Of a stretch of 64,000 bases of DNA, positions 21,824-61,168 are shown piece after piece. The DNA is taken from sequence record LT960552.1; one strand, written 5' to 3'. Both the position numbers and the translations under genes were made by a program. The notes beneath the pieces are model-generated. The model saw only the letters and a list, made by a program, of their open reading frames with translations. It ran no database searches and had not been told where the DNA came from. Within the stretch, counting starts at the first letter, position 1, and each line of letters opens with the position of its first letter.

Positions 21824-22547
21824 ATGAAAATGGCTAAATTTTCAACACTACGTCCTTGGGTTCCACCCGCTAATTTCAAAATTAATTCTTCAGTATTTGA
21901 AGAATGGGTACGTGAAGCATTGGTACAATATTGTATTGAAAACGATAATATGTATGATTATTGTGATGGTGATTTTACCGGAGTCTTTAACTTAGATACA
22001 ACATTATTCATTGATGGCTTTATCGAAGAAGGTGAAACTGAAGATGATGATGTTAACATTGATTTTATTAATATTATAAAAGAACATTTACCAGAAGATT
22101 TTTCTGAAAAACGCATTGGGGTTTATTTCTGCAATGGCTAAAATACAATTAAAAGAAGAATTCATTTTACGAGTGGGTGACACTAAACCCGTAAAATATA
22201 ATCTTGAAAAGGAAGAACATTGTTTTTCTTATTTCGCATGTACATGTGATGATGAAGATAAAAAGTACTGGAAAGATAAAATTAATGATCATATGCCTAA
22301 TTTTGATCCAGAAAAACATGCTGATATTGTAAGCCAGCTTGTAATGGAAATTAATCATTGTTATCATGGTAGTGTAAGTATTGATTCTGATATGTGGTTT
22401 GGAGTATCTACATCATGTCATATTTGGAATAAAGACTTTACTGAATATGAACTTGTTAATATATTCATGCAATGTGATGAAGTCTCAATTGGTTTAATGG
22501 CAATTATTGAAATTCTACGAAAGGTAGTATTAGATGAAGAAAATTAA
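21824..22547 (+). other. two hypothetical genes (21824-22141, 22134-22547)
   Basis: Overlapping ORFs. Confidence 0.7.
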
Positions 22548-23364
22548 ATGGCTGATTCAGGATACATCACGAATGTATTCTGCCATTGAAGACGAAGTAA
22601 CTCCACTAAAAGAATTAGGGTTTGAAGTAATACCATTTGGTATGATACCATTCACAAATACAATGACTGGAATTGATGACTTAGACCCTGATGATTTTTA
22701 TATCATTCGAGGTGGTACTAAAGTTGTCCAATTGTTAGATTCTGGTACTCCTGATAATTTAAGTCCAGAATTGATTTCGACATTACGTAAAGGTATTTCA
22801 TATAATCAAACAATGTTTGATCAAGCACATTATTCAAGTAATGGCCTTTTACCACTACTTAACAGTACTCCAACAATTTTAGATCTATCTAAAGAATCAG
22901 ATTTATATGCATCATTCAGTACTCCAAAGTTTGTTAAACCGAGTTCTGATTTAAAAGCATTTACAGCAGGTATTATGGATGAAGGTGAGGTATTAAAATA
23001 TTTCATTGAAAAACATTATTACCGCACTAACTATGCCGAAGAAACTGCATTAGTGCATGATGTTGTTGAAATTGATGCAGAGTATCGTTTTATATGCTTA
23101 AATGGTGAAGTTATTACCGGTTCAATGTATCGTAAAAATGACCAATTAGTATTAAGTTCAAAAATTCCCAAAATTATTCTTGACACTGCTGATGAATATG
23201 CATTATTATATCATCCAAGTGAAATTTACACAATGGATTTAGCTGAAACACCAAACGGTATTAAAATCGTTGAATATAATTGCTGGAATGGTTCTGGTCT
23301 ATATAAAATGGACACTAAAAAACTTTTCAGTACTATTCATGAATATTACAAAGGTAAACTATGA
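22534..23364 (+). CDS. ATP-grasp domain protein (DUF4343-like)
   Basis: FVKPSSDLKAF, EYRFICLNGEVITGSMY, DLAETPNGIKIVEYN. Confidence 0.8.
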   Translation: MKKIKWLIQDTSRMYSAIEDEVTPLKELGFEVIPFGMIPFTNTMTGIDDLDPDDFYIIRGGTKVVQLLDSGTPDNLSPELISTLRKGISYNQTMFDQAHYSSNGLLPLLNSTPTILDLSKESDLYASFSTPKFVKPSSDLKAFTAGIMDEGEVLKYFIEKHYYRTNYAEETALVHDVVEIDAEYRFICLNGEVITGSMYRKNDQLVLSSKIPKIILDTADEYALLYHPSEIYTMDLAETPNGIKIVEYNCWNGSGLYKMDTKKLFSTIHEYYKGKL

Positions 23365-29465: not shown

Positions 29466-29584
29466 CGGGAATTGGTGTAATGGCAGCACAACGTTATAAC
29501 ATAAATTCTTGTAGTAGAATTTCACAGCAACCAAAACAATTGCATAGGGAGCCGTGAGATAAGGTTCGATTCCTTGATTCCCGA
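29466..29584 (+). ncRNA. interrupted tRNA-like RNA, ACAGCA family
   Basis: Acceptor, D and T arms with insert AAATTCT/AGAATTT hairpin + ACAGCAA. Confidence 0.75.
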
Positions 29585-29807
29585 CTAAATAATGTTAATG
29601 ATGCTCACACGTAGAAATACGTAGTGGGCTTTTTCTTTTTATGGAGTTTGATAATGAAAATAACAAGATTATATAAAACTGTAGGATATGTTGCAATCAC
29701 ACTATTTAAAAATAATCCACAATATGGCGGTCAGTGTAGTACGTGTGGAAGATATGATAATGATGGTGGTCCATTATGTGGGAATGTCTTTTGTCCAGGA
29801 GGAAACT

Positions 29808-30436
29808 AATGAATCCTAATGATTTTAATAGTTCCGAAAAATATACATGGTGCTATACTATGTCTGATCTTCGTGATATGTATGACTGTTTAAAACTTGT
29901 TGATGAACGTTTTATTACTGAATATGGTTGGGCTTTACCTAATGATATTAAAGTTGGTGATACTTTTATTATTGAGGATCACAATACTGAACACGGAGTA
30001 AAACTTCTGAATAGTTTTACTATTCCATATCAATATATCGCCTGCTTTCACGCTAACATTTAAGGGTAGTTATATGAATTTTATCAGAGAAATGAAGTAC
30101 AACCAAAATAATTCATTATATGATTTTAAAACACATGTGCACAATAATAATTTTGTAAATTTTCGTGTTATTGTTGGTGGACAGGACGCATTTTACGTAA
30201 CGTATAGATTTGACACAGATACAATTGATTATATTTCATTACGTTCATATGAAGGAAGTAAATTCATCAATAATGTTACATCTATTATTGAAAGTAAAGA
30301 AATATATGAAACCGAAAAACTAACTCAACCATTTTTAACATATTTTAGTTACGAAAATATTTGTGAATTTTGTTGTTGGGTTTCCGAGGCAGTTATAAAA
30401 TCGGAGAATGAAAATGCACTTTCTAATAATGGATAA
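29808..30436 (+). other. two hypothetical genes
   Basis: ORFs with SD sites. Confidence 0.7.
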
Positions 30437-31202
30437 GTACTTTAATGAAGAAGGTTTCCGTGTAATGAAAAATTACATGGTACAAAATAATATCTCTCAC
30501 ACTTCGGTAAAACCAGTTCCAGTACTGAATATATTTGTTCCAGAAGGTGTAGAAGATTATTCCGATGCTTCATATGATAAGTACTTTGATAAATCAGTAC
30601 CTACTATGTCATTTGGTAGCTATGCATTAGCTAACCAATTAGTTAAAGAAGGATATACTCCTGGTGGGTATATTAATGAGAACTTTAATATTAAAGTTCA
30701 AATGGAAAATTGGGGATTGAATAACTTCCTTAATGGTACAGCTATATTTGGCACTTTAGAGAATATGACTGCACCAGATTGGAAACGTATCTTCATTCGT
30801 CCAGTACATGATACTAAACAAATGTTAGCTACTGTTATAGAAAAAGAAAACTTTAACTATTCTTTAGAACTATTCCGTTATGGTAAAGAACAAGGATTTG
30901 AAATTATGATTTCTGAGTTCAAAGAAATTAAAGCTGAGTTTCGTTTGTTTATTGTTAAAGGTAAAGTAGTAGCACATTCTTTATATAAATTGAATGGTAC
31001 TGTTTGTATTTCCCCTAATGTACCTGATGAAATTATTACTAAAGCAGAAGAATTAAGTACTATTTGGACTCCTGCTGAAGCATTTGTAATGGATTTTGCA
31101 GAAACTGTTGACGGATTTAAAGTACTTGAAGTTAATAACATAAACTGTGCTGGATTCTATGCATGTGATATTCCTTCAATTGTTGAGGCATTTATAAAAT
31201 GA
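30429..31202 (+). CDS. ATP-grasp domain protein (DUF4343-like), second copy
   Basis: FIRPVHDTK, EFRLFIVKGKVVAHSLY, FVMDFAETVDGFKVLEVNNIN. Confidence 0.8.
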   Translation: MDKYFNEEGFRVMKNYMVQNNISHTSVKPVPVLNIFVPEGVEDYSDASYDKYFDKSVPTMSFGSYALANQLVKEGYTPGGYINENFNIKVQMENWGLNNFLNGTAIFGTLENMTAPDWKRIFIRPVHDTKQMLATVIEKENFNYSLELFRYGKEQGFEIMISEFKEIKAEFRLFIVKGKVVAHSLYKLNGTVCISPNVPDEIITKAEELSTIWTPAEAFVMDFAETVDGFKVLEVNNINCAGFYACDIPSIVEAFIK

Positions 31203-42240: not shown

Positions 42241-42316
42241 GCCTTTGTAGCTCAGTGGTTAGAGCGGGAATCTCTAAAATTCTTTGTCGTCGGTTCGAGT
42301 CCGACCATCGGCACCA
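42241..42316 (+). tRNA. amber suppressor tRNA (anticodon CTA)
   Basis: 76 nt; stem GGAAT/ATTCT, loop CTCTAAA; canonical D and T arms; CCA encoded; two acceptor mismatches. Confidence 0.8.
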
Positions 42317-42353: not shown

Positions 42354-42440
42354 GCGGGTATGAGGATGGCGTACCTCAAACAGACAAAATACGTTCTGTT
42401 GCTGAAAGATGCTAAGATGGTTCAATTCCATCTACCCGCC
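42354..42440 (+). ncRNA. tRNA-like RNA with 12-nt anticodon-arm loop
   Basis: GCGGGTA/TACCCGC, GAGG/CCTC, AACAG/CTGTT, T arm; framed by CTTTAGTG/CACTAAAG. Confidence 0.55.
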
Positions 42441-42784
42441 GCACTAAAGGTAGCATCGAAAGATGAGAAAATAACACGAGGCGTCGGAATACGCCTACAC
42501 TTATAATCGTACAATGGGGCATATAGCCGATAACACCCTTTGGCTTCCAACGCGGTGTAGGGTGCGGAATATCCCCGCCATGCCAACTTTAATGTTGCGT
42601 AAGCTAATGCGTCGTAATGGGAGTTAAGATGAAACCTGATTATATTGAATGTTTAGCAAGTGGTGCTGGACATAATTATCAAAAGCAGTCTATACCATCA
42701 GAGTATATCTGTGGTACTGAAGGTTTAGAACCAACTAAAGTAGTACAATGTCAGTACTGCGGTGAAGAAAAGAAATAATTAAAC

Positions 42785-47638: not shown

Positions 47639-47752
47639 GCAGTGATCGTCTAGAGGCTTAGGACACGAAAAGCGATTCTTGATTAAGAATCTTACGGCAT
47701 CCACAACTTTCATTCAACGAACGTAACGCAGGTTCGAATCCTGCTCACTGCA
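47639..47752 (+). ncRNA. interrupted tRNA-Glu-like RNA, ACAGCA family
   Basis: Glu-type D arm and TAAC V loop; insert GATTCTT/AAGAATC + ACGGCA; CTTTCAT loop. Confidence 0.8.
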
Positions 47753-48461: not shown

Positions 48462-48587
48462 GTGGGGTTAGCTCAGTTTGGTAGAGCAGCGAAAGAAACC
48501 AAAATGGAATCTTGAAAAGGATTCTAACAGCATTATATCTTCTACTGTAAATTCGCGGGTCGGTGTGTTCAAATCCACCACCCCACA
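48462..48587 (+). ncRNA. interrupted tRNA-like RNA with GTA loop, ACAGCA family
   Basis: GCGAA...insert...CTGTAAA-TTCGC. Confidence 0.8.
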
Positions 48588-48742
48588 CAAAATTGGTAAA
48601 AAAGCTCTGCGGTGGGACATTATATTCATCCACATGTTATTAGTTATTTTAAACAATCTGGTGAATATTTCAATGAATTGGATAAAACCGAACCAAGTAA
48701 ATCAGATGTTAGTGGTGAACCAACAATAACTGGAAAATAAAA

Positions 48743-49471: not shown

Positions 49472-49592
49472 GGCGAGTTAGCTCAGTGGTAGAGCACGTA
49501 GAAACCAAGGATTCTAGTACTAGATTCCCGCAGCAACAATAACTCATACTATGATAAAGTCGTGGTCGGGGGTTCAAATCCCTCACTCGCCG
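49472..49592 (+). ncRNA. interrupted tRNA-like RNA with CAT loop, ACAGCA family
   Basis: Insert GGATTCT-AGTACT-AGATTCC + GCAGCAA; CTCATAC. Confidence 0.8.
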
Positions 49593-51837: not shown

Positions 51838-51900
51838 GTGTATATGTTCAGTAATGAACTAAACCGTTGTTAAACTATAAATTACCTTTTGGGTGAAAAA

Positions 51901-53514
51901 ATGAAAAAAACTTTATTAGCGTTATCTATTGTAGTAGCATCAATGACTGCATTTAACGCAACCGCAGCAGTCTCTTTAAAATCATCAGGCGACCAATTTG
52001 GTCCGGCTATGTCTGATTTACTGAATTCAAATGAAAACGGTAACTGGAATCAGCAACGATTCATGAACACGTTCAATAATCGCTTTAATGGTACTGAAGC
52101 AGAAGCATTAGCATTGTTTAATGCTGTAAAAGGTGGTAATGTTCCAACATCACTTGATAGCTTTAATAGTACTTTACCATCTTCAGGTGGCACTGTCACT
52201 AAAGGTGATAAGGGCGACAAAGGTGACAAAGGCGAAAATGGTGCAGATGGTGCAGATGGTGCAGATGGTGCAGATGGTACAAAAGTATCATTAACTCCAG
52301 ATGGTACTATTACATTGGATGATGGTAAAGGTGGAACCGTTCAACAAGATTTGGCTACACAAGCTGAATTAAATCAAGAACGTTATAAACTTGAACAAAA
52401 AGATAAAGAACACGATGTTACTCTTACTGATCATGAAACTCGTTTAGATACAGTCGAAAATATGACGAATGGTTTAAATGTCGTTGTAGGGACTAATAAA
52501 CAAGATATCGAAGAATTAAAAGACGGTAAAGCAGACAAAAAAGATCTGGATAAAGAAGTTGCAGATCGTGATGCTGGTGATAAAGTACTAGATTCTAAAA
52601 TTGATAATGTAGTATCAAATCAATCAAGTACTGATGCTGCACAAAATGCCGCCATTGATAGTAAAGTAGATAAAACTACACAAGCAGCGAAAGATTCAGC
52701 TCAAGATACTGCTATTGGTAATAAAGTTGACAAAAGTCAATATAATACTGATAAAGTAATTCAGGGTATTCATGATGCTGCACAAGACAATGCAATTATC
52801 GGACTGGCAGTAACAAAAGCAGACAAAAAAGATCTGGATAAAGAAGTAGCTGACCGTAAAACCGCAGATAATAAATTGCAATCAAATATTGACAATGAAG
52901 CAAATGTGCGTAATAATGCAGATGTTGCATTGAAAAACAATATTGATAAAAATAAAGCTGACCAACTTGGTGTTGATACTGCACAAAATGCCGTTATTGA
53001 TACTAAAGCAAGTAAGCAAGATTTAAACACTGAAGTTGATGAACGTAAAGTAGCTGATAAAAAGTTGCAGAAAAACATTGACAATGAAGCAAATGTACGT
53101 AATAATGCAGACCAAGTTCTTAGTTCTCGCATTGATACAAATAGTACTACTTTAGTACAACACGACCAACGTATTACAAGTAACACACAACGTGTTGGTG
53201 TAGTTGAAAATCGTGTAACTAATTTAGAACAAAGTACTAATCGTCGGTTTACAGAATTAAAAAGTACTGTAGATGATAACCGTAAAGTTGCAAGTGCTGG
53301 TATTGCTGGTGCAGGTGCAATGGCAAATATTCCACAAGTATCGCAAAATAGTACTTTCTCTGTCGGTGCTGGTATTGGTGGTTATGATAGTGAGCAAGCA
53401 GTTGCTGTAGGATTCTCTGCTCGTATTAACAACAACATTGTAACTAAGGTTGCTGTAAGTACAAATACACAATCCGAGTTGTTATGGGGTGCTGGTGTAG
53501 GCGTAGAATGGTAA
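51901..53514 (+). CDS. YadA-type trimeric autotransporter with collagen-like and coiled-coil repeats
   Basis: Signal peptide; GXY repeats; C-terminal ASAGIAGAGAMANIP...VGAGIGGYDSEQAVAVG...GVGVEW anchor. Confidence 0.85.
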   Translation: MKKTLLALSIVVASMTAFNATAAVSLKSSGDQFGPAMSDLLNSNENGNWNQQRFMNTFNNRFNGTEAEALALFNAVKGGNVPTSLDSFNSTLPSSGGTVTKGDKGDKGDKGENGADGADGADGADGTKVSLTPDGTITLDDGKGGTVQQDLATQAELNQERYKLEQKDKEHDVTLTDHETRLDTVENMTNGLNVVVGTNKQDIEELKDGKADKKDLDKEVADRDAGDKVLDSKIDNVVSNQSSTDAAQNAAIDSKVDKTTQAAKDSAQDTAIGNKVDKSQYNTDKVIQGIHDAAQDNAIIGLAVTKADKKDLDKEVADRKTADNKLQSNIDNEANVRNNADVALKNNIDKNKADQLGVDTAQNAVIDTKASKQDLNTEVDERKVADKKLQKNIDNEANVRNNADQVLSSRIDTNSTTLVQHDQRITSNTQRVGVVENRVTNLEQSTNRRFTELKSTVDDNRKVASAGIAGAGAMANIPQVSQNSTFSVGAGIGGYDSEQAVAVGFSARINNNIVTKVAVSTNTQSELLWGAGVGVEW

Positions 53515-53579: not shown

Positions 53580-54089
53580 ATGTATACAGAAGAATATTGT
53601 GAAAACAATTTGATAAACATTGGAAAAGGTGCTTCCCGAACAGTTTTTGCAATAAATCTTGATTATGTAGTTAAAGTTGCACATAATAAATTTGGTATAG
53701 ACCAAAATATTCAAGAGATAAAATTGTTTCAAAAATATGGAAAGATATTACCTCTTTGTAAAATAGATCTTTACCATAGTAATGAAAACTATATAATAAT
53801 GGAACGTATTAATACTTTTAATGTAGAGTATAATGCATTTGATATCACCCAAATAGATATGATATCACATTTGGTTTGTGTTGAACAAATTGATAATGAT
53901 TATATTAGCACATTACCTCCAGTACTGGCAGAATTTGCAAATAATTTACTCAGTAATGAATTAAGTAATGACGAAATTAGAAATGTATTGTATGATGTTG
54001 TACATTATAATGTTGGTATAAAAGATGGTAAGATATTAATTCTTGATTATGGATTTACTGAAGAATTAGATTCTGAATATTGGGAATAA
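53580..54089 (+). CDS. minimal protein-kinase-like protein
   Basis: IGKGASRTVF, VVKVA, IIMER, DVVHYNVG, ILILDYG. Confidence 0.7.
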   Translation: MYTEEYCENNLINIGKGASRTVFAINLDYVVKVAHNKFGIDQNIQEIKLFQKYGKILPLCKIDLYHSNENYIIMERINTFNVEYNAFDITQIDMISHLVCVEQIDNDYISTLPPVLAEFANNLLSNELSNDEIRNVLYDVVHYNVGIKDGKILILDYGFTEELDSEYWE

Positions 54090-54097
54090 AAAATAGC

Positions 54098-54126
54098 TTG
54101 ACATGATGATTTGAATTTGATATAAT
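54098..54126 (+). promoter_or_regulatory. sigma70-type promoter
   Basis: TTGACA-N17-TATAAT. Confidence 0.85.
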
Positions 54127-54211
54127 GTATATCACATCGACGGATGATAAACGTAACTCTGGTACTTATGATTAAGTACTTTTTTGAAAATAAAATATAA
54201 GGGCTTTATAA

Positions 54212-55216
54212 ATGGCTAAGAACACAATTACTGATATTGGCGAAGTTGAACGTACTGTGAATTATATCAAGTTCCAGATCTCTCAAGCTGACGAGCAGCT
54301 TGCACCATTCGCTAACAGCGATAAGCCAAAGATTTGCTATGCACATCTGTTGGAGTGGAAAAAGCAGTTGCAATCTGAACTGTATGAAATCCGTCAGGCT
54401 CAGCAGAAAGCACGTCATAACAATCCACACAAGTAATAAGCCATGCCGCCAGCATTGTTGGCGGCGTCTTTTAAGTGATAACAAGAGTATATTATAATGA
54501 AAAGTGCAACAGCGTTAAAAAATATGAATCAGCGTATTCAAACATTACGTTCTCAACTGGATTTAGCTTGGTCAGATTGGAGTAAGTTAAATAGTATTGA
54601 GACTAAAACCAAAGATGAATCAAAAGATCTATCTAAAATTTCAGGTTTTATTAGTAAATTAAATTATGAAATTCGCGGTTTGGAATTGTCTTTTAATGAA
54701 TTGAAAAAACAAGTCATTGATGAAATCATTTTGTCTTAATAAAAAATGGGGTTAGTTATGGGTGTGATAGTTATTTACTGTATATTAGGTTCCCTTGGTT
54801 TATTCACATTGTATATGTTTGTAGTAACATCTGCAATGGGGACAGAACGACTTAAAACTTCTCAGTACTTTATGTCTTCATTGAGTTATTGTGAAGAAGC
54901 AACAACTAAAATTAATTTGTTGATTGATAAGTATGAAGCAGGGCTTATTAAAGCAAAATTAAAAAATAATGTAATTGAATTTACTGAAATGGAAAAAAAT
55001 ATTCCAGCAGGTGAAATCTGGATAGCAAATAAATATTTTTCATATGGTCAGTTACATCGTTATGGTGCGAATGGAAATATCTCTTGGCAATGTAATAAAC
55101 CAAGTTTAAAAACTTTTAAACGAATTATTAAACTTGAAAAACAGCTAAACGTTGCTCATCAAGAACCAGTACCGAAAAGTGCAAAATCAACAGATGAGCC
55201 TGTAATTTTGGACTAA
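54212..55216 (+). other. three hypothetical genes (54212, 54497, 54746)
   Basis: ORFs. Confidence 0.7.
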
Positions 55217-55320
55217 GGGCGTAATTGCCCTATTTTAATTAAGAGATTTAAAATATACATTTGAGAACTTCATGGTATGGGAAAAGTAGTGAATTTCTTT
55301 CAAATGTTATCGTAAATATT

Positions 55321-55349
55321 TGAAACAACTAAAAAAATTGTGGTATAAT
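55321..55349 (+). promoter_or_regulatory. TGAAAC-N14-TGGTATAAT promoter
   Basis: Upstream of a permuted RNA. Confidence 0.8.
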
Positions 55350-55366
55350 ATAGTACATAAGGCAAC

Positions 55367-55482
55367 GGAATCTTACAGCAAAAATACTAATTTTGATGAA
55401 AACGAAACGACGAGGTTCGAATCCTCACCCACGAATTGCCTTATTATTAGTGGGAGCATGGTGCTGGATAAACAAAGATTCC
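55367..55482 (+). ncRNA. circularly permuted tRNA-like (YrlA-like) RNA, ACAGCA family
   Basis: GGAATCT/AGATTCC; T arm precedes CCCAC/GTGGG helix and D-like arm. Confidence 0.75.
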
Positions 55483-55503
55483 AAAATTTAAGTTAGAAAA
55501 ATA

Positions 55504-55532
55504 TGAAACAAATCAAAAATTTGTGGTATAAT
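55504..55532 (+). promoter_or_regulatory. TGAAAC-N14-TGGTATAAT promoter
   Basis: Motif match. Confidence 0.8.
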
Positions 55533-55539
55533 ATAAGAA

Positions 55540-55652
55540 GTAAAGCGGGATGGTGATTGATGAAAGCTGTTATTTGATTCTAGACAATCATAATAAGCGA
55601 GTAATAGAACAGGGTTCTTAATATCACATGGGTTCAAATCCCTGTCGCTGCA
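55540..55652 (+). ncRNA. degenerate tRNA-like RNA
   Basis: T loop GGTTCAAATCC and bulged acceptor; no anticodon arm. Confidence 0.4.
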
Positions 55653-55665
55653 CAAAAGCAACAAA

Positions 55666-55784
55666 TGAAATCTTACAGCAAACACAACATTTTTTCCTTG
55701 CATAGAAAAACGGTGGGGTTCGATTCCCCAACATCCAAGTTGCTTTTTAGGATGTGTCTGGACGACCGTATGACACAGATTTCA
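55666..55784 (+). ncRNA. circularly permuted tRNA-like RNA, ACAGCA family
   Basis: TGAAATCT/AGATTTCA; CGGT/ACCG; T arm; ACATCC/GGATGT. Confidence 0.75.
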
Positions 55785-55789
55785 GTACT

Positions 55790-55864
55790 GTTCCGTTAGA
55801 CAAATTGGTATAGTCACCACACTTTCAATGTGGATTTCTGAGGGTTCAAGTCCCTCACGGAACG
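55790..55864 (+). tRNA. tRNA-Glu(TTC)
   Basis: Loop CTTTCAA; ends G-CTA. Confidence 0.88.
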
Positions 55865-55868
55865 CTAA

Positions 55869-55983
55869 AGGATTCGTACAGCAACAATAAACTCTTAAAA
55901 TTCAATTGGTGAAAACAACCTTGCAGTTCGATTCTGCTTCCACAATGCGTGGATCTGGTGGTGGATAGAAAAAACCGAATCCT
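55869..55983 (+). ncRNA. circularly permuted tRNA-like RNA, ACAGCA family
   Basis: AGGATTCG/CGAATCCT; GCAG-TTCGATT-CTGC; TCCAC/GTGGA. Confidence 0.7.
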
Positions 55984-56021
55984 GATTTTAATTAAGAAGT
56001 ACTAAAGAATTTGATACACAC

Positions 56022-56174
56022 GGATTTATACAGCAAACATAATCCTAAAATAAAACATACGATAATGTTATTAACTCGGAATTCGTTCCTTTCGTTAGTA
56101 CTTGGCAACTTGGGTACTTAAATAAGTTGTATCACCTCATGTGTATCGGATTAGTGGTGATTATAAATAAATCC
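56022..56174 (+). ncRNA. ACAGCA-family RNA with divergent interior
   Basis: GGATTTA-T-ACAGCAA...TAAATCC. Confidence 0.6.
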
Positions 56175-56210
56175 AGTAAATCAAAAGTACCTTTATCGGT
56201 ACTTTTTTAT

Positions 56211-56303
56211 GGAAGATTGGCAGAGTTTGGTTTATTGCACAGGTCTTGAGTACCTGCGGGGGTTAATAGCCCTCCGTGAGTTCGAATCTCACATCTTCCT
56301 CCA
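56211..56303 (+). tRNA. tRNA-Ser(TGA)
   Basis: Loop CTTGAGT, long V arm, CCA encoded. Confidence 0.85.
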
Positions 56304-56321
56304 AATTTTATGTAGTACAAT

Positions 56322-56397
56322 GGGGTACGTAGCTCAGTCTGGTAGAGCAGCCATGCGAAAACGGTGTGTCGGTGGTTCGAATCCACTCGCTCCCCAC
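56322..56397 (+). tRNA. degenerate tRNA-Phe(GAA)-like
   Basis: Canonical D and T arms; mismatched acceptor; anticodon arm one nt short. Confidence 0.5.
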
Positions 56398-56400
56398 TAA

Positions 56401-56457
56401 GGAATCTAGCAGCAACCATAACCCAATCAAACTTTTAATTTGACAATTATGGATTCC
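56401..56457 (+). ncRNA. minimal ACAGCA-family RNA displaying a Lys(TTT) anticodon stem-loop
   Basis: GGAATCT/GGATTCC; TCAAA-CTTTTAA-TTTGA. Confidence 0.7.
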
Positions 56458-56480
56458 AGTTATTTTAAGTTGAGAATAGC

Positions 56481-56885
56481 ATGACGGATAACGAAAAACT
56501 TGAAAATATATTAATTGAAGCATTGACAATAATTAATACTTCAACATATAATTTTGAATCGTCCAAAGACGATTCAAAATCTAGATTTGTCTTATGCGGT
56601 AAAAGAGCACAACTTAAGTTGTACTTTTCTGCCAAATATGGTGAATTAAGTATAGAATTTATTCATCACTTGATTGGAGATACCCTATCATTTCAGATTA
56701 ATTATTATGATGATTCGGACGAAGATGATGATTACCATAATTTATATGGTGAAATACGTATTCCAAGAACTGAAGAACAATACTTTCAGTACTACACAAT
56801 TCAAGATCATGTTTTCTCTTTAGAGTTTTATAAATTATTAGAAAACATAATGAACGAATTATTGGTAAAGTGGCAGAGCGGCTGA
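56481..56885 (+). CDS. hypothetical protein, EE-x-x-FQ family
   Basis: TEEQYFQYYT; 3' end overlaps tRNA-Ser. Confidence 0.7.
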   Translation: MTDNEKLENILIEALTIINTSTYNFESSKDDSKSRFVLCGKRAQLKLYFSAKYGELSIEFIHHLIGDTLSFQINYYDDSDEDDDYHNLYGEIRIPRTEEQYFQYYTIQDHVFSLEFYKLLENIMNELLVKWQSG

Positions 56886-56954
56886 ATGCAACCGCTTGGA
56901 AAGCGGTCAGGTTAGGTGATACTAGCCTCGTAGGTTCAAATCCTATCTTTACCG
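56864..56954 (+). tRNA. tRNA-Ser(GGA)
   Basis: Loop TTGGAAA, long V arm; ends G-CAA. Confidence 0.92.
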
Positions 56955-57004
56955 CAAAAGTAATAACCTCCTTATTAAAGAATACATACCCATAGGAGAA
57001 TATT

Positions 57005-57361
57005 ATGTACGAGAAAGATGATGGTCCATTAACAGATGAACAATTGTGTATTATTCGTGAAATGAATAGTCATTTAGAACAATCTAATTTAAGTATAGAC
57101 TTGGATTGGTTAAATAGTGAAAAACAAGGAAATGCAATGTATTACGACTACTATTACAAAATTGATGGTGAACTTCGTCGTCATACCAGTAATCAAGAGT
57201 TAACTGATGCGGAAATCAATAATATTTTTGGTGCAAGCAAACATGTGGTAATGCTTACTCCAATTGTTTTTGAACGTGAGATTAGTACGGAAGATAAGTC
57301 TGGTAATAAAATTAAAAGTACTGAAAAAGTACACGTAGGATTTTTAGGTTACGTGGAATAA
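57005..57361 (+). CDS. hypothetical protein
   Basis: GGAG SD; terminator 57373-57393. Confidence 0.7.
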   Translation: MYEKDDGPLTDEQLCIIREMNSHLEQSNLSIDLDWLNSEKQGNAMYYDYYYKIDGELRRHTSNQELTDAEINNIFGASKHVVMLTPIVFEREISTEDKSGNKIKSTEKVHVGFLGYVE

Positions 57362-57406
57362 TATAATTTATTGGATTCGAAAGAATCCTTTTTAAGTGAG
57401 ATGATT

Positions 57407-57631
57407 ATGGATAATCAACATAAAAAGATTAAAGGGTATCGTGACCTTTCTCAAAAAGAAATCGATGCAATGAATGAAATTAAACAACTAGCAGCTACTG
57501 TTGAAGAGTTAATTGAAAAACTTGAAGGAACTGACTCTATTGATAAACGCTGGCTTGCTATTGCAAAAACAGATTTACAAAAAGGGTTCATGTCAGCAGT
57601 GCGAAGCGTGGCTAAACCAGATTCCTTTTGA
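57407..57631 (+). CDS. acb2: anti-CBASS cyclic-oligonucleotide sponge Acb2
   Basis: [20 protein letters not shown]...[27 protein letters not shown] closely matches Acb2/T4 Vs.4 family as recalled. Confidence 0.88.
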
Positions 57632-57639
57632 GGAAAATA

Positions 57640-58020
57640 ATGCATACAATTGATAACCATGCTGATATAATTGATGATGTTATAACTGAAATACTTGAAA
57701 TTTATACGTGTAAAGTTGAAGTTTATAATTATGGTAATTTGTTTTCACAGCACGGCTATAGTACTAAACATAATATAAATTATCATATAAATGCAAAGTA
57801 CTATAATAATAATTCAAAAAATGGTAGACGAGCTAATAGTCTTGTGATAGAATTTAAATTCACTAACAGAGTTCCTAAAGGACTAAAAGATTATTATAGA
57901 TTATCAATACCTGAAATACAAAGTATTACAGAAGAACGACATTTTCAATTAATGTTAGTTACTGATGATATGTACTTGGATTATGAAGTTATAAATAAAT
58001 TACGTACACATATTATGTAA
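57640..58020 (+). CDS. hypothetical protein, EE-x-x-FQ family
   Basis: TEERHFQL. Confidence 0.7.
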   Translation: MHTIDNHADIIDDVITEILEIYTCKVEVYNYGNLFSQHGYSTKHNINYHINAKYYNNNSKNGRRANSLVIEFKFTNRVPKGLKDYYRLSIPEIQSITEERHFQLMLVTDDMYLDYEVINKLRTHIM

Positions 58021-58029
58021 AAAAGTTTT

Positions 58030-58083
58030 TAGAATCTAACAGCAATCAAAACTCATTGGATATATGAAAAAAAATAGATTCTA
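58030..58083 (+). ncRNA. minimal ACAGCA-family RNA (GAT-centred loop)
   Basis: TAGAATCT/AGATTCTA; TCAT-TGGATAT-ATGA. Confidence 0.65.
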
Positions 58084-58088
58084 GTATT

Positions 58089-58160
58089 TGGGAATTATCT
58101 CAGCGGTAGAGAGCACAACTGATAATTGTGAGGTCACTGGTTCAAATCCAGTATTCCCAA
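58089..58160 (+). tRNA. tRNA-Ile(GAT)
   Basis: Loop CTGATAA; ends A-CTA. Confidence 0.88.
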
Positions 58161-58259
58161 CTAAGTAGTTCAGTACTGAAATATGTACAGTGAAATTATT
58201 CAACACTATAGGTAGAACTTTGAATGAATCAGTAAGCCTATAAGTAACTATATTAAATT

Positions 58260-58390
58260 TGGAATTCAACAGCAATCTTCACTTACTAAAAACAGCTACC
58301 TCACGGTTTGTAGGTTCGAGTCCTACCTTGTACTTTCGAGTACATGTGGTGAAATCGGTAAACACGGCTGTCCAAAAGAAATGAATTCCA
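58260..58390 (+). ncRNA. circularly permuted tRNA-Leu-like RNA, ACAGCA family
   Basis: TGGAATTCA/TGAATTCCA; T arm, TGTACT-TTCG-AGTACA, Leu-type D arm. Confidence 0.85.
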
Positions 58391-58443
58391 GTATTAATTA
58401 AGACATAAATATTCTTATACATTATTTTTGTAGGAATATAGAT

Positions 58444-59043
58444 ATGGAAATGAAAAAGTTGATGGAAGAGATATCTTCCATAATGGAAGGACAATTACCA
58501 GGATATTATTATCACGGTAGCTCTAGACCAATATCAAATTTCAGTGATGAGTTTGTGGGTAGAGGTAATGATGAATATGGTCCAGGTATATATTTTAGTT
58601 CTGCACCAAATACTTCAATAGGTTATGCAAAAGATGGTGGTTCTAATGGAATGGTATATCAATGCGAACTGAATTTAAGAAAAGAACTATCTAAAAAAAC
58701 TAAAATTAATAAAGCAGTACTATTTAAATTAATACAAAATACACCTGATGAAGATGCTTATACTAACTGGAATGAAAATAAAAATGTTGCTTATAGAACA
58801 GCATTACAGGGTTACATCGATGAAGGAAATATGTACGATGCATTAATGGGTGTTTGGTACGATTGGTATCGGGAGTATCCTGTTCAATTCGTAAGATCAT
58901 TAGTACAATTAGGATATGACGGATACATATATACTTTTGGAAGCGGTGAACGTTTTATAATAGTATATAATCCAGCAAGTATTAAAGTTATAAACACTTT
59001 CAATCCAGAAGAAGCTAAGCAGAAACTACTTGGAAGTGATTAA
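58444..59043 (+). CDS. putative ADP-ribosyltransferase-fold protein
   Basis: YYHGS...YGPGIYFSSAPNTSIGYA motif. Confidence 0.5.
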   Translation: MEMKKLMEEISSIMEGQLPGYYYHGSSRPISNFSDEFVGRGNDEYGPGIYFSSAPNTSIGYAKDGGSNGMVYQCELNLRKELSKKTKINKAVLFKLIQNTPDEDAYTNWNENKNVAYRTALQGYIDEGNMYDALMGVWYDWYREYPVQFVRSLVQLGYDGYIYTFGSGERFIIVYNPASIKVINTFNPEEAKQKLLGSD

Positions 59044-59049
59044 AAAATT

Positions 59050-59169
59050 TGGAATTCAACAGCAAATCATTCAAAACACGTAGCATGTCGTAGGTTCAAG
59101 TCCTACCAGTACTTAATTGTACTGTAGCTCAGTCGGGAGAGCAGCCACCTTAAAAAGAAATGAATTCCA
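59050..59169 (+). ncRNA. circularly permuted tRNA-like RNA, ACAGCA family
   Basis: TGGAATTCA/TGAATTCCA; T arm, CAGTAC/GTACTG, D arm TAGCTCAGTCGGGAGAGC. Confidence 0.85.
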
Positions 59170-59326
59170 GTATTAATTACAAAGAGAACCAATAATGTAC
59201 ACTAATATTTTTGATATATTAAAAGATTTAACAGTGTTTGGAAAAGTAACATATCCAGTAAAATAAAATAATTAGGTTATTTCGAAGTTCTAAAACAACG
59301 AAACATTTACTAACGTAAAAAGAATT

Positions 59327-59385
59327 TGGAATCTATCAGCAACCATAACCCAATCAAACATTTAATTTGACAATTATGGATTCCA
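59327..59385 (+). ncRNA. minimal ACAGCA-family RNA, near-copy of 56401-56457
   Basis: TCAAA-CATTTAA-TTTGA. Confidence 0.7.
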
Positions 59386-59407
59386 GCCTATTTTTTGGAG
59401 TACAAAA

Positions 59408-59674
59408 ATGTATTATGCTCGGTTAGAACATCCTGATAATGGATATGAAATTGAAAGAATACATCTTAAAACCTTAGATTGTGAAAAGTACTATCCAGTA
59501 TATTCAATTAATATTGGAAGTTGGAGTACCAGTGTATATCTTAGAGATGATGAGTATGAATATAATAGTGTAAACTTTGAGTTCTACATCAAAAATGGAG
59601 ATGAATATATTCTCGAAGATATTTTCTCAGACCCTGATTTAAATCCGTACTTGATAGAAGACGATGAAGAATAA
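59408..59674 (+). CDS. hypothetical protein
   Basis: GGAG SD. Confidence 0.7.
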   Translation: MYYARLEHPDNGYEIERIHLKTLDCEKYYPVYSINIGSWSTSVYLRDDEYEYNSVNFEFYIKNGDEYILEDIFSDPDLNPYLIEDDEE

Positions 59675-59688
59675 ATATCACAAATAAA

Positions 59689-59717
59689 TGAAACGATTAA
59701 AAAATTTGTGGTATAAT
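59689..59717 (+). promoter_or_regulatory. TGAAAC-N14-TGGTATAAT promoter
   Basis: Upstream of tRNA-Asn. Confidence 0.8.
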
Positions 59718-59740
59718 ATAAGTAAGAAAAACAACAAGAT

Positions 59741-59813
59741 GGTTACGTAGCTCAGTGGTTAGAGCGTTCGCCTGTTAAGCGAGTGGTCGCTGGTTCAAAT
59801 CCAGCCGTGATCG
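59741..59813 (+). tRNA. tRNA-Asn(GTT)
   Basis: Loop CTGTTAA; ends G-CAA. Confidence 0.92.
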
Positions 59814-59861
59814 CAAATTGATGTTTGGTATGGTTTAAAAATATAATAACCAAACATTATA

Positions 59862-59904
59862 AAGAATCTTTCAGCATTAACACGGTGAAAATATATAGAT
59901 TCTT
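59862..59904 (+). ncRNA. minimal ACAGCA-family RNA
   Basis: AAGAATCT-T-TCAGCA...AGATTCTT. Confidence 0.55.
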
Positions 59905-59908
59905 GATT

Positions 59909-59985
59909 AGGAGATTAGCATAGATGGCCTAATGCACCGGTCTTTGAAATCGGTATCGGTGGTTCGAATCCACCATCTCCTGCCA
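59909..59985 (+). tRNA. tRNA-Gln(TTG)
   Basis: Loop CTTTGAA, CCA encoded. Confidence 0.9.
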
Positions 59986-60004
59986 ATTTAAGTAGAATAA
60001 TAGT

Positions 60005-60427
60005 ATGAAGTTATGTAAGAGATGTAATCAGAATAAGCCATTAGAAGCTTTTTCAAAAAATAAATCCAAAAAAGACGGATTACAAGTGAGTTGTAAGGAA
60101 TGTTTTAAAACAATAAACAACAATTCATATAAAAATGAATCTGGTGAACGTCGAAGAAAAGTTGGCGAGACTCGTGATAGAATTAAAGCTATTAATAGAT
60201 CGATTATATCAGAACATCGATCAGTAAATCCATGTCACTTTTGTGGAGAAACCGAACATTGTTGTTTAGACTTTCATCACTTAGACCCTACTGTCAAAGA
60301 TAAAGAAATATCTGTGTTGGTACATTATAGTACTGCTAGATTGGTAAAGGAAATAGCTAAATGTATAGTTATTTGCTCAAATTGTCACCGGAAACACCAT
60401 GCTGGTATTGAAGGTTACGAATTATAA
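60005..60427 (+). mobile_element. HNH-type endonuclease
   Basis: CKRC...CKEC; CHFCGE...LDFHHLDP...CIVICSNCHRKHH. Confidence 0.85.
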
Positions 60428-60568
60428 AGTTTTCATTTCCTTGGTGAAAACAAGCTGGCATGATTCCCCCTGCTTGTAAAATTATCGAACGGGAACCGCG
60501 TAGCACCGGTACAGGTCAGATTGTAAAGATCAAGTATGTACAGTACTGAGAGCGGCAGTACAAAAAAT

Positions 60569-61104: not shown

Positions 61105-61168
61105 AAGAATCCAACAGCACCCATAAATGAAATCAACTGTTAATTGAAAAATTCAAAAATGGATTCTT
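61105..61168 (+). ncRNA. minimal ACAGCA-family RNA displaying an Asn(GTT) anticodon stem-loop
   Basis: AAGAATCC/GGATTCTT; TCAA-CTGTTAA-TTGA. Confidence 0.7.

Follow-up and report, generated by a model that had tools for sequence, protein, structure and literature searches.

Capped, circularly permuted tRNA bodies within a shared-frame family of phage small RNAs

Results

The tRNA island of the Yersinia jumbo phage fHe-Yen9-03 encodes capped, circularly permuted tRNA bodies. They are members of a phage small-RNA family that has so far gone unannotated, whose common features are a shared closing helix and a CAGCAA motif. The stretch of DNA analysed here (the window) is 64 kb of this island, bases 248001-312000 of LT960552.1. 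In many other phages the CAGCAA RNA module adjoins a gene for a Ro60-like ring protein, and the RNAs are therefore most likely its Y-RNA-like partners.

A preliminary description had placed permuted tRNA bodies at five loci (P1, P2, P3, P5, and P6; Table 1). All five are conserved, strand-specific structured elements and share one closing frame, a helix of 6–8 bp (RGAAUC/GAUUCY) whose 5′ strand continues into NNN-CAGCAA. The permuted reading itself held at P5 and P6, with compensatory changes across six phages; at P1, P2, and P3 it extended only to a T arm and a capped stem, the D arm being weak or absent. Within the frame, NNN-CAGCAA is unpaired opposite an A-rich 3′ strand. The plus strand carries 12 strict frames and the minus strand none, versus 0.16 in shuffled sequence. 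In phage BF, 11 copies lie in the tRNA island versus none on the plus strand of 1–150 kb. P1–P6 and most other elements are 92–98% identical between fHe-Yen9-03 and BF (whole region, 87.8%), the exceptions being N4 (85%) and the 59863 element, which aligns only partly. Covariation supports the frame helix, the anticodon-like stem, the V arm, and the T arm.

Table 1 Frame RNAs and frame-containing tRNA-like genes (window positions), and the Ro60-like candidate gene (record positions)
Element	Position	Strand	Features
P1	55357..55482	+	Frame helix GGAAUCUU/AAGAUUCC, ACAGCAA, T arm, 5-bp capped stem
P2	55667..55783	+	Frame GAAAUCU/AGAUUUC, ACAGCAA, T arm, 6-bp capped stem
P3	55870..55982	+	Frame GGAUUCG/CGAAUCC, ACAGCAA, 4-bp T arm, 5-bp capped stem
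P4	56022..56174	+	153-nt frame RNA, three internal hairpins, not tRNA-like
P5	58261..58389	+	Frame GGAAUUCA/UGAAUUCC, ACAGCAA; complete permuted class-II tRNA body
P6	59051..59168	+	Frame as in P5; permuted tRNA body with canonical D arm
Short frame RNA	56401..56457	+	Hairpin UCAAA-CUUUUAA-UUUGA; loop resembles tRNA-Lys UUU anticodon loop
Short frame RNA	58031..58082	+	Hairpin UCAU-UGGAUAU-AUGA; directly upstream of tRNA-Ile
Short frame RNA	59328..59384	+	Paralogue of 56401, loop CAUUUAA
Short frame	59863..59903	+	CAGCAU variant; directly upstream of tRNA-Gln
Short frame RNA	61106..61167	+	CAGCAC variant; UCAA-CUGUUAA-UUGA, loop resembles tRNA-Asn GUU anticodon loop
N1	29471..29587	+	Capped frame hairpin (AAAUUCU..AGAAUUU) and CACAGCAA within anticodon arm
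N2	47639..47752	+	Anticodon-arm insert: frame hairpin GAUUCUU..AAGAAUC and UUACGGCA
N3	48463..48590	+	tRNA with frame hairpin between positions 31 and 32
N4	49472..49592	+	tRNA with frame hairpin; Rfam tRNA 48.3 bits
g179	LT960552.1 102192-103715		DUF2828/DUF7788 protein; the phage's Ro60-like candidate

P5 consists of a 5-bp anticodon-like stem (ACAGC/GCUGU), a long V arm, a T arm (GUAGG/CCUAC), a UUCG-capped acceptor, and a D arm. The acceptor has seven positions, one of them U·U, plus an extra U-A pair before the cap, and is followed by U8, G9, and the D arm with G18 G19. Its D-arm sequence, TTCG cap, and V-arm remnant had all been described correctly, and the class-II body is complete, but it cannot be assigned firmly to leucine because a conserved anticodon is absent. 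P6 has a 5-bp anticodon-like stem (GUAGC/GCCAC) with a conserved A·C mismatch, a V loop (AUGUC), a T arm, and a 6–7 bp acceptor with a UUAAUU cap; UA links this acceptor to the D arm (GCUC..GAGC). Canonical tertiary nucleotides can be read directly in both (U8, A14, the 15:48 pair, G18 G19, and T54-A58). Alignments of six phages were 100% paired with five double-change pairs for P5 (A3) and 96% paired with four for P6 (A2), while slid controls gave 16–43% and 0–1. A generic search of the 64 kb for a T arm, a capped acceptor, and a D arm in succession returned only P5, P6, and one tandem-tRNA artefact, with 0–1 matches on shuffles. The two RNAs are paralogues with about 72–73% cross-identity, and the architecture recurs in unrelated phages, which leaves the several independent permutation events proposed earlier without support.

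When the frame ends are joined, ARAGORN calls both P5 and P6 as tRNAs at its default threshold, which would suit true permuted tRNA genes of the Cyanidioschyzon type, with the precursor ligated across the frame and cut open at the cap before CCA addition and charging. The phage group also has genes for RNA ligases, for CCA addition, and for a Thg1-like enzyme, and in fHe-Yen9-03 the 5′ strand of the P6 anticodon-like stem runs directly into CUUAAAA. However, the anticodon heptamer varies among orthologues (UAA, AUA, AAA), that of P5 lacks U33, and in XbC2 and Kaldavass nothing is left of the cap, giving a 5-bp hairpin. The permuted genes of C. merolae and some archaea have the same order (3′ half, linker, 5′ half) and yield normal charged tRNAs by way of a circular intermediate with a bulge-helix-bulge, whereas the frame RNAs lack a conserved anticodon, their linker is a minimal or absent cap, and neither a bulge-helix-bulge motif nor a splicing endonuclease was seen. 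We regard such maturation as very improbable. That these RNAs are not aminoacylated, as first suggested, is plausible from their sequences, since the P6 cap is free to vary (UUAAUU, AUCG, UUCG, or none) and the anticodon is not conserved. The accompanying argument that the cap leaves no room for RNase P is unsafe, because RNase P cleaves the YrlA of Mycobacterium smegmatis despite its capped 7-bp acceptor, and this RNA receives CCA (PMC4201824).

The remaining longer RNAs carry reduced or different cargo. P1 has its own promoter at 55320-55349 (11/12 matches, extended −10) and a conserved leader that pairs with the cap loop in a 7-bp pseudoknot; its alignment (A4) is 94% paired and the leader-cap helix 98%, with one pair of this helix changed on both sides from A-U to G-C. 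Its ‘D arm’ is a 3-bp mini-hairpin, broken in 3/7 sequences. P1 homologues were found in 18 phage records, none with an annotated RNA feature; six of the 18 list only hypothetical-protein CDS in the matching region. The P2 cap includes GUUGCU and its leader the complementary AGCAAC. Its alignment (A5) is 100% paired, with a three-state pair in the T stem and another in the capped stem, and contained no conserved D arm. No reliable D arm was found in P3, where the D region is deleted in Mimasvirus orthologues and circularised P3 is called by ARAGORN at a relaxed threshold only. The length of P4 falls within a class of ~150–170 nt adjoining DUF2828 genes in other phages.

The frame also closes short hairpin RNAs. 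The 56401 RNA has CAGCAA-CCAUA in common with the insert of a Lys-like tRNA in XbC2 and GAP32, the 58031 stem covaries (UUCU/AGAA in GAP32 and XbC2), and the 61106 hairpin sequence is invariant at seven loci (six phages and one metagenomic contig). In addition, four tRNA-like genes of normal order (N1–N4) contain a capped hairpin version of the frame. N2 scores 38.6 bits against Rfam tRNA, and its acceptor, T stem, and hairpin covary over six phages. In N3 the insert is followed by an intact CUGUAAA (Tyr GUA-like) loop. In BF, GAP32, and CBB the N4 insert splits the anticodon stem of a tRNA-Lys(UUU) between positions 28 and 29, with covariation in the inner stem, while in fHe-Yen9-03 the loop has degenerated.

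The Lys- and Asn-like heptaloops of the short frames and the Lys and Tyr loops of the N-type tRNAs could mark autonomous decoys or sponges. Together with the tRNA bodies, such hairpins would titrate nucleases or sensors of host defences directed at tRNA, and the frame would be a mere stabilising clamp. The island carries anti-defence genes (Acb2-like and ART-PolyVal), and the phage group encodes the tRNA repair enzymes RnlA and Pnkp. We nevertheless consider decoys unlikely: orthologous sites differ in loop sequence (CUUUUAA, CUUUUAC, CCUAACC, and others), P5 and P6 have no anticodon loop, and an invariant CAGCAA across differing helices would go unexplained, as would the tight linkage to DUF2828 genes described below.

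The 3′ flank of the frame and a plain hairpin at 57373-57388 have a terminator-like look. This hairpin combines the same helix with a U tract, the sequence 3′ of the frames is rich in U and A, and P1 is followed by a promoter, all of which would suit regulatory or recombination cassettes, terminators, or processing sites. Circular permutation converts the open frame into the capped one, an outcome expected of tandem recombination, and the permuted bodies would then be by-products of recombination between frame copies within tRNA genes. The stem-loop/promoter units (PeSLs) described in T4-type phages (PMC2839356, PMC4122927) are likewise repeated, lineage-specific stem-loops in a hyperplastic early region, but they are simple hairpins plus promoter, with no conserved single-stranded motif, structured cargo, or link to a Ro-like gene. 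Against cassettes stand the compensatory changes inside the cargo, kept across genera, the asymmetric single-stranded motif conserved on one strand only, and the recurrence of the module, with different helices, next to one particular protein gene in unrelated phages; we judge them improbable, slightly more so than decoys.

The DUF2828 protein is predicted to match the Ro60/Rsr-like fold. The fHe-Yen9-03 protein, g179, is 91.7% identical to its BF orthologue gp180, which has DUF2828 and DUF7788 domains. With an AF2 model (pLDDT 88, pTM 0.86), the top ten Foldseek matches in the PDB were all Ro60, TROVE, or Rsr (E 2e-9 to 1e-7), with TM about 0.55–0.58 for most and 0.34–0.52 for TROVE-domain and Rsr entries, followed by vWA domains only. 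The DUF2828 sequence profile reached only E about 1 against TROVE. In fHe-Yen9-03 about 200 kb separate the Ro-like gene, which has no adjoining frame, from the RNAs, and no TROVE gene was found near the window RNAs.

Linkage was evaluated at 80 viral DUF2828 loci, with the frame defined as a 7-bp helix, 1–4 nt, CAGCAA, and the closing strand. There were 125 frames on the gene strand versus eight on the opposite strand, and 3–14 matches for control motifs of the same composition; the loci include related phages, so these counts are not independent events. Frames were present at 59/80 loci and within 300 nt of the gene at 44/80, and distances peaked at 0–300 nt (47 upstream, 17 downstream). Because many DUF2828 genes adjoin tRNA arrays (39/80 loci), part of the linkage could reflect shared residence in tRNA islands; frames also occur at DUF2828 loci without any tRNA. 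The size classes (~55, ~115, and ~160 nt) are those of the window. Permuted tRNA bodies were found in frames near DUF2828 genes at L140, L168, L176, L184, L196, L200, and L206, and at L182 a full-length YrlA match (39.4 bits) lies 340 nt upstream of the gene. In FelixO1, four ACAGCAA frames with a different helix (AGACCRW) directly follow the DUF2828 gene, one of them carrying a T arm, a capped acceptor, and a D arm. This recurrence of helix, CAGCAA, and permuted body in FelixO1-like and other unrelated phages indicates an RNA family for which the architecture is the ancestral state.

A frame directly upstream of a DUF2828 gene could be a cis-regulatory leader instead of a separate RNA. Extended to the whole family, frames would be cis-acting binding sites or leaders that let the DUF2828 protein, or some other factor, control adjacent genes or the processing of tRNAs; the 47 frames within 300 nt upstream of the gene, and the several window frames directly before ORFs or tRNAs, are consistent with this. 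However, P1 has a strong promoter of its own and a conserved leader, each genome holds many copies, and a leader has no need for tRNA-like cargo, which leaves cis action a little less probable again than cassettes.

Discussion

The YrlA-like architecture proposed in the preliminary description is essentially right, the RNAs being a variant with a different motif and a different presumed Ro-like partner. As in YrlA (Rfam RF02553), the RNA partner of bacterial and phage Rsr/Ro60, the predicted ends pair in a stem with a short conserved 5′-strand motif, the tRNA mimic keeps tRNA tertiary nucleotides and places V first, then the T arm, the capped acceptor-like stem, and the D arm, and the genome encodes a protein of (here predicted) Ro60 fold. 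The P6 tRNA-like core aligns to model positions 24–84 (36.2 bits, E 3e-5), only the core and below the gathering threshold of 69 bits. With no GNCGAAN0-1G motif, in place of which CAGCAA stands unpaired after the helix, and no nearby TROVE gene, these RNAs are not YrlA proper. Their presumed partner is a DUF2828/DUF7788 rather than a Pfam TROVE protein, its gene is distant in fHe-Yen9-03, and, unlike YrlA, the frame occurs in 12–16 copies per genome with interchangeable cargo.

Phage-encoded Ro60-fold proteins with Y-like RNAs are also known from Thermus phage phiLo, whose phiRo60 binds Yrl RNAs and host PNPase, with a proposed hijack of PNPase for counter-defence (PMC12135203). That protein is a canonical TROVE protein, unlike the DUF2828 protein, and Yrl1 and Yrl2 have a CGAA motif and a stem-bulge-stem, with no tRNA body described (PMC12135203). 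In the Felixounavirus Bas63, the Ro60-like gp130, encoded upstream of tRNA genes, counters Ppl defence, and its authors suspected hidden Y RNAs, guessing some ‘tRNAs’ to be Y RNAs, but identified no such RNA (PMC11482910). By description, gp130 is the same kind of gene as FelixO1 ORF42, Ro60-like and immediately preceding a tRNA array, and the FelixO1 ACAGCAA frames are candidates for the suspected Y RNAs.

We favour, as the probable reading, two-module Y-RNA-like noncoding RNAs in which the frame docks g179 and the cargo varies. The first module would be the frame, whose helix would pair the 5′ and 3′ ends of the RNA and serve as a candidate docking site, playing for g179 the role that the GNCGAAN0-1G or GGUCCGA stem plays for Rsr/Ro60. 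The second would be the cargo: a closed-acceptor tRNA-like body without anticodon (P5, P6), a reduced body (P1–P3), or small hairpins, some with anticodon-loop-like heptaloops. In N1–N4 the cargo would be a whole tRNA, with the capped frame set into its anticodon stem. By analogy with Ro60 and Y RNAs, the cargo may gate g179 or connect it with enzymes that recognise tRNA or process RNA (exoribonuclease, RNA ligase/Pnkp), and during infection these RNAs may serve RNA repair, RNA decay, or counter-defence.

Permuted tRNA bodies in a phage tRNA island

The window, which matches bases 248001–312000 of LT960552.1 at 100% identity (54000–60000 corresponds to 302000–308000 of the record), covers the tRNA island of a 352.6-kb Eneladusvirus jumbo phage, the Yersinia phage fHe-Yen9-03, in which ARAGORN called 20 tRNAs and Rfam added three aberrant ones. 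All elements of interest lie on the + strand, among them six candidate small RNAs (P1–P6) and four tRNA-like genes of normal order (N1–N4). The LT960552.1 record carries no annotation at P1, P2, P3, P5, or P6, the five loci named in a preliminary description, and in related records the BLAST matches of P1 and P6 coincide with no RNA feature. Identity to Serratia phage BF is 92–98% for most elements, including P1–P6, and 87.8% for the region.

Features of the tRNA island and of related sequences (window coordinates unless marked; single numbers are start positions)
Feature	Position	Strand	Description
P1	55367	+	candidate small RNA
P2	55667	+	candidate small RNA
P3	55870	+	candidate small RNA
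P4	56022	+	candidate small RNA
P5	58261	+	candidate small RNA
P6	59051	+	candidate small RNA
N1	29471	+	normal-order tRNA-like gene; helix capped, then CAGCAA
N2	47639	+	as N1
N3	48463	+	as N1
N4	49472	+	as N1
P1 leader	55357-55366		AAGGCAA
P1 acceptor-cap loop	55442-55448		UUGCCUU
tRNA-like piece	55545-55655	+	strong promoter on one side, P2 on the other; called a tRNA by no tool
'tRNA-Ser'	56323-56395	+	73 nt; Rfam 36 bits; uncalled by ARAGORN
Plain hairpin	57373-57388	+	GGAUUC-GAAA-GAAUCC, then UUUUUAAG; the frame's helix sequence, terminator-like; no CAGCAA, no cargo
Suppressor-type tRNA	42241-42316		CUA anticodon
Aberrant tRNA-like gene	42355-42445	+	3′ of the CUA tRNA; acceptor GCGGGUA/UACCCGC, good T arm, extended anticodon region, enclosed by a longer helix
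Small ORF	57407-57631	+	Acb2/Tad1 hairpin domain (PF24729, E 8e-20); likely an anti-CBASS/anti-Thoeris nucleotide sponge
ART-PolyVal gene	58444-59043	+	199-aa ADP-ribosyltransferase (PF18760, E 1.6e-11) exactly between P5 and P6; position retained in BF, GAP32, and CBB, apparently not in XbC2
TelA-like protein	3174-4310
R2K-clade ATP-grasp proteins (two)	22534-23364; 30408-31202
Adhesin-like protein	51889-53514		YadA anchor/collagen repeats
g179	102192-103715 (record)		DUF2828 protein
BF gp110	7227-7670 (BF stretch L130); BF 57227-57673		'RNA ligase'; Acb1-like, anti-CBASS, PF23474
BF gp178	1-1054 (BF stretch L131); BF 99795-101054		Rnl2-type ligase with OB-fold domain, separated by one small gene from the Ro-like gene downstream
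YrlA-type RNA	5543-5658 (metagenomic phage contig L182)		full length, 39.4 bits, without CAGCAA

Orthologues were aligned from Serratia phage BF, Erwinia pEa_SNUABM_12, Cronobacter GAP32, Xanthomonas XbC2, Pectobacterium CBB, Erwinia Kaldavass, and one metagenomic contig. In the P5 alignment pairing reaches 100% and five pairs show double changes (three in the closing helix, one each in the anticodon-like stem and V arm); in that of P6 pairing is 96% and four pairs do so (one in the closing helix, two in the anticodon-like stem, one in the T stem); slid controls gave 16–43% pairing and 0–1 compensatory pairs. Both RNAs contain U8, A14, G18 and G19, a canonical T loop (T54–A58), and a 15:48 pair, which is A15:U48 in P5 and G15:C48 in P6. 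With their ends joined, both are called as tRNAs by ARAGORN at default settings, with a 42–44 nt 'intron' across the junction. A generic search of the 64 kb for a T arm followed by a capped acceptor and a D arm recovered only P5, P6, and a tandem tRNA-Pro artefact (0–1 in shuffles).

Permuted, capped tRNA bodies had been proposed at five loci, and the proposal is borne out for P5 and P6 but only half right for the others. In P1 the 'D arm' amounts to a weak hairpin of 3 bp. The T arm and the capped stem of P2 each show three-state covariation, but its alignment conserves no D arm, and P3 has lost its D region in Mimasvirus. P4 shares the ends of the other P elements and has no tRNA features. 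Several independent permutation events had also been suggested, which the analysis does not support; P5 and P6 are paralogues, with a cross-identity of about 72–73%.

The P1 leader is complementary to the loop that caps its acceptor, with A-U to G-C covariation across three phages, and P2 has a counterpart pairing (AGCAAC/GUUGCU); these pairings may form a pseudoknot or join two molecules. The tRNA-like piece beside P2 resembles a minihelix of acceptor and T arm that bears a long hairpin on its 5′ side. A hammerhead-like UGAUGA...CGAAAC in P1 was rejected by eye, as it has no stem II.

A shared frame with interchangeable cargo

Every P element is enclosed by a frame consisting of a 6–8 bp helix (RGAAUC.../...GAUUCY) with NNN-CAGCAA on the 5′ strand, an A-rich stretch ahead of the 3′ strand, and the flank AGUAUUAAUUAAG. 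By a strict definition, the window contains 12 frames on the + strand and none on the − strand (0.16 in shuffles). In BF, inspected over 1–150 kb and 264–313 kb, the tRNA island contains 11, and the + strand of the first 150 kb is free of them. Five more copies are short (41–62 nt), with hairpins as their sole content, and some of their heptaloops have the sequence of an anticodon loop, CUUUUAA that of Lys and CUGUUAA that of Asn, the latter in a hairpin that is invariant across copies from seven loci.

The frame also occurs inside out in N1–N4, inserted on the 5′ side of the anticodon stem. In BF, GAP32, and CBB, the orthologue of N4 is a tRNA-Lys(UUU) that is interrupted after position 28 by the insert and resumes at position 29, with a covarying inner stem; N3 retains a Tyr-like CUGUAAA loop. 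The open frames of the P elements and the inside-out frames of the N genes therefore represent one architecture in two circular permutations, with interchangeable cargo. The 'tRNA-Ser' is the orthologue of a 119–127 nt Lys-like tRNA in XbC2, GAP32, and CBB, from which the frame insert was imprecisely deleted, leaving a defective anticodon arm.

Other identities for the frame were considered. A spliced intron that restores the anticodon loop was rejected because P5 and P6 lack a consistent heptamer and the N-type inserts lie at 28/29 or 31/32. The helix strands are in swapped order in the N-type genes, so a simple, MITE-like insertion does not fit. No test supports a site for RNase III or RNase E, CsrA binding to GGA in the class I loops, or mimicry of a type III antitoxin, all of which were considered as well. 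An Rfam search of positions 54000–60500 at E ≤ 10 returned only tRNA and a partial YrlA, with no ribozyme, ToxI-like, or other family on the frame. A PeSL-like or cis-regulatory role may apply, and the frame flanks look terminator-like; by the PeSL pattern of a simple stem-loop directly before an early sigma-70 promoter, a promoter follows P1 only, and most frames precede ORFs or tRNAs. A scan of viral contigs with RGAATCTAACAGCAA gave mostly chance matches, the real ones being in Rak2-like contigs and a few contigs of ~170 kb.

Relationship to YrlA and to permuted tRNA genes

Two features define YrlA RNAs (Rfam RF02553): a GNCGAAN0-1G motif close to the 5′ end, which is a presumed Rsr contact, and a gene on the same strand as a TROVE Ro60 gene and no more than about 4 kb from it (PMC4201824). 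P5 and P6 match the order of the YrlA tRNA-like domain (V, T arm, capped acceptor-like stem, D arm) including its tertiary-pair nucleotides, whereas P1–P3 match in part only. P6 scored 36.2 bits against the Rfam YrlA model (E 3e-5; 59083–59145, model positions 24–84 of 114), below the gathering threshold of 69 bits, with the tRNA-like core aligned and the Ro-binding stem unaligned; no other P element scored at E ≤ 10. The YrlA motif is absent here, and all frames carry NNN-CAGCAA instead. No TROVE domain was found in the window among the 12 ORFs of at least 230 aa scanned against Pfam (14 listed). Unlike YrlA, which lies near its TROVE Ro60 gene, the RNAs lie about 200 kb downstream of g179, the Ro-like DUF2828 gene of fHe-Yen9-03, a distance that is a caveat for a Ro-like partner. 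The earlier YrlA-like assignment is essentially right, but the RNAs depart from YrlA proper in motif, score, and nearby TROVE gene. The frame RNAs are a new YrlA-like variant with a CAGCAA motif, a presumed DUF2828 partner, and a modular build.

In the permuted tRNA genes of Cyanidioschyzon, joining the ends restores a conserved anticodon loop, and removal of the linker yields mature ends. P5 and P6 do not follow this pattern. The seven nucleotides next to the 5′ strand of their anticodon-like stem, on its 3′ side, vary from one orthologue to another, and the P6 cap is variable (UUAAUU, AUCG, UUCG, or none). Because the cap varies and no anticodon is conserved, the alignments argue against maturation to a charged tRNA. 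However, the capped 7-bp acceptor of Mycobacterium smegmatis YrlA can be opened by RNase P (PMC4201824).

Frames are linked to DUF2828 genes

Eighty viral loci, each with a DUF2828 gene at its centre and no more than 6 kb of flank (888 kb in total), were searched for frames, defined as a perfect 7-bp helix, 1–4 nt, CAGCAA, and a closing strand within 190 nt. The counts, which related phages among the loci inflate, were 125 frames on the gene strand and eight on the opposite strand, compared with 3–14 for eight composition-matched control motifs. At least one frame was present in 59 of the 80 loci, and in 44 a frame lay within 300 nt of the gene; distances peak sharply at 0–300 nt (47 upstream, 17 downstream). 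DUF2828 genes often adjoin tRNA arrays, which tempers this linkage, but frames also occur in DUF2828 loci without any tRNA. The helix consensus is A-G-G-W-U-N-S, and the frames form three size classes, ~55, ~115, and ~160 nt, which parallel the window's short elements, its tRNA-like elements, and P4, respectively. At least seven loci contain a frame with a V hairpin, T arm, capped 7-bp acceptor, and D arm.

In FelixO1, the tRNA array directly 3′ of the DUF2828 gene includes four unannotated frames, one of them with a permuted tRNA body, whose helix differs (AGACCRW/WYGGUCU) while ACAGCAA is the same. In a metagenomic phage contig, a YrlA-type RNA is encoded 340 nt upstream of a DUF2828 gene flanked by two CAGCAA frames, and the two kinds of RNA may coexist there. 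The frame RNAs are a real, conserved, unannotated RNA family that occurs far beyond fHe-Yen9-03. Differing helices, a constant single-stranded motif, and a constant neighbour gene form the pattern expected of a protein-recognition module, which helix and CAGCAA would constitute.

The DUF2828 protein has a predicted Ro60-like fold

BF gp180 is a 508-aa protein annotated as 'RNA-binding protein', encoded near an Rnl2-type RNA ligase, with Pfam hits to DUF2828 and DUF7788, not TROVE. Searches of the PDB with the DUF2828 protein (phmmer and hmmsearch) were uninformative, reaching TROVE only at E about 1, and a fold comparison was needed. An AlphaFold2 model built with 22 homologues (pLDDT 88, pTM 0.86) retrieved Ro60, TROVE, and Rsr entries as all of its top ten structural matches (E 2e-9 to 1e-7), with TM values mostly about 0.55–0.58 (0.34–0.52 for TROVE-domain/Rsr entries) over about 560 alignment columns; the matches that followed were isolated vWA domains. 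The predicted structure combines a HEAT-repeat ring with a vWA domain and matches Ro60, Rsr, and phiRo60 over its full length, which by predicted fold places gp180 and its fHe-Yen9-03 orthologue g179 (91.7% identity) with the Ro60/TROVE proteins.

A DUF2828 orthologue is present in all frame-carrying relatives, and homologues occur in about 680–710 phage records, including FelixO1-like, KVP40-like, and A511-like phages, mycobacteriophages, and jumbo phages. Three of the six mycobacteriophage records listed annotate the homologue as 'Ro-like RNA binding protein'. No Y RNA was found beside the Ro-like gene of BF. Further enzymes encoded by the phage group are RnlA, Pnkp, a CCA-adding enzyme, an RlaP nucleotidyltransferase, a Thg1-like enzyme, and TyrRS.

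Proposed role of the frame RNAs

Ro60–Y RNA particles are familiar from animals and a few bacteria, and Ro60 binds the Y RNA stem mainly via its 5′ strand. The DUF2828 ring would likewise bind the helix/CAGCAA module, and the cargo (closed-acceptor tRNA body, hairpins, or whole tRNA) would recruit or gate other factors. The genomic linkage and the predicted fold make the frame RNAs candidate Y RNAs, in the sense of RNAs that a Ro60-family protein would bind through a terminal stem. Ro-like (DUF2828) proteins are very common in phages, and to our knowledge no RNA partner of theirs is known so far. Whether helix plus CAGCAA is this missing partner, defining a new and widespread class of Y RNAs whose cargo can be exchanged and which includes tRNA–Y chimeras, with a Ro-docking module within the anticodon stem of Lys- and Tyr-like tRNAs, is in our judgement an evenly balanced proposition.

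In a Felixounavirus, a Ro60-like protein counters the Ppl defence, and the authors of that study suspected that the adjoining tRNA genes include Y RNAs (PMC11482910); the Ro60 of a Thermus phage binds both Yrl RNAs and the PNPase of its host (PMC12135203). By analogy, both likely indicate the direction of frame-RNA function. Where Y RNAs could only be guessed at among tRNA genes (PMC11482910), the closing helix, CAGCAA, and optional permuted tRNA body supply a concrete signature that is searchable in any phage genome and mutable at the bench, so that the idea is directly testable. The frame also accounts for 'pseudo', 'intron-containing', or unannotated tRNA-like genes of jumbo-phage tRNA islands. 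If the proposed partnership is true, it would mean a phage ribonucleoprotein that acts directly on or with tRNAs, in RNA repair or in the defeat of defences such as Ppl.
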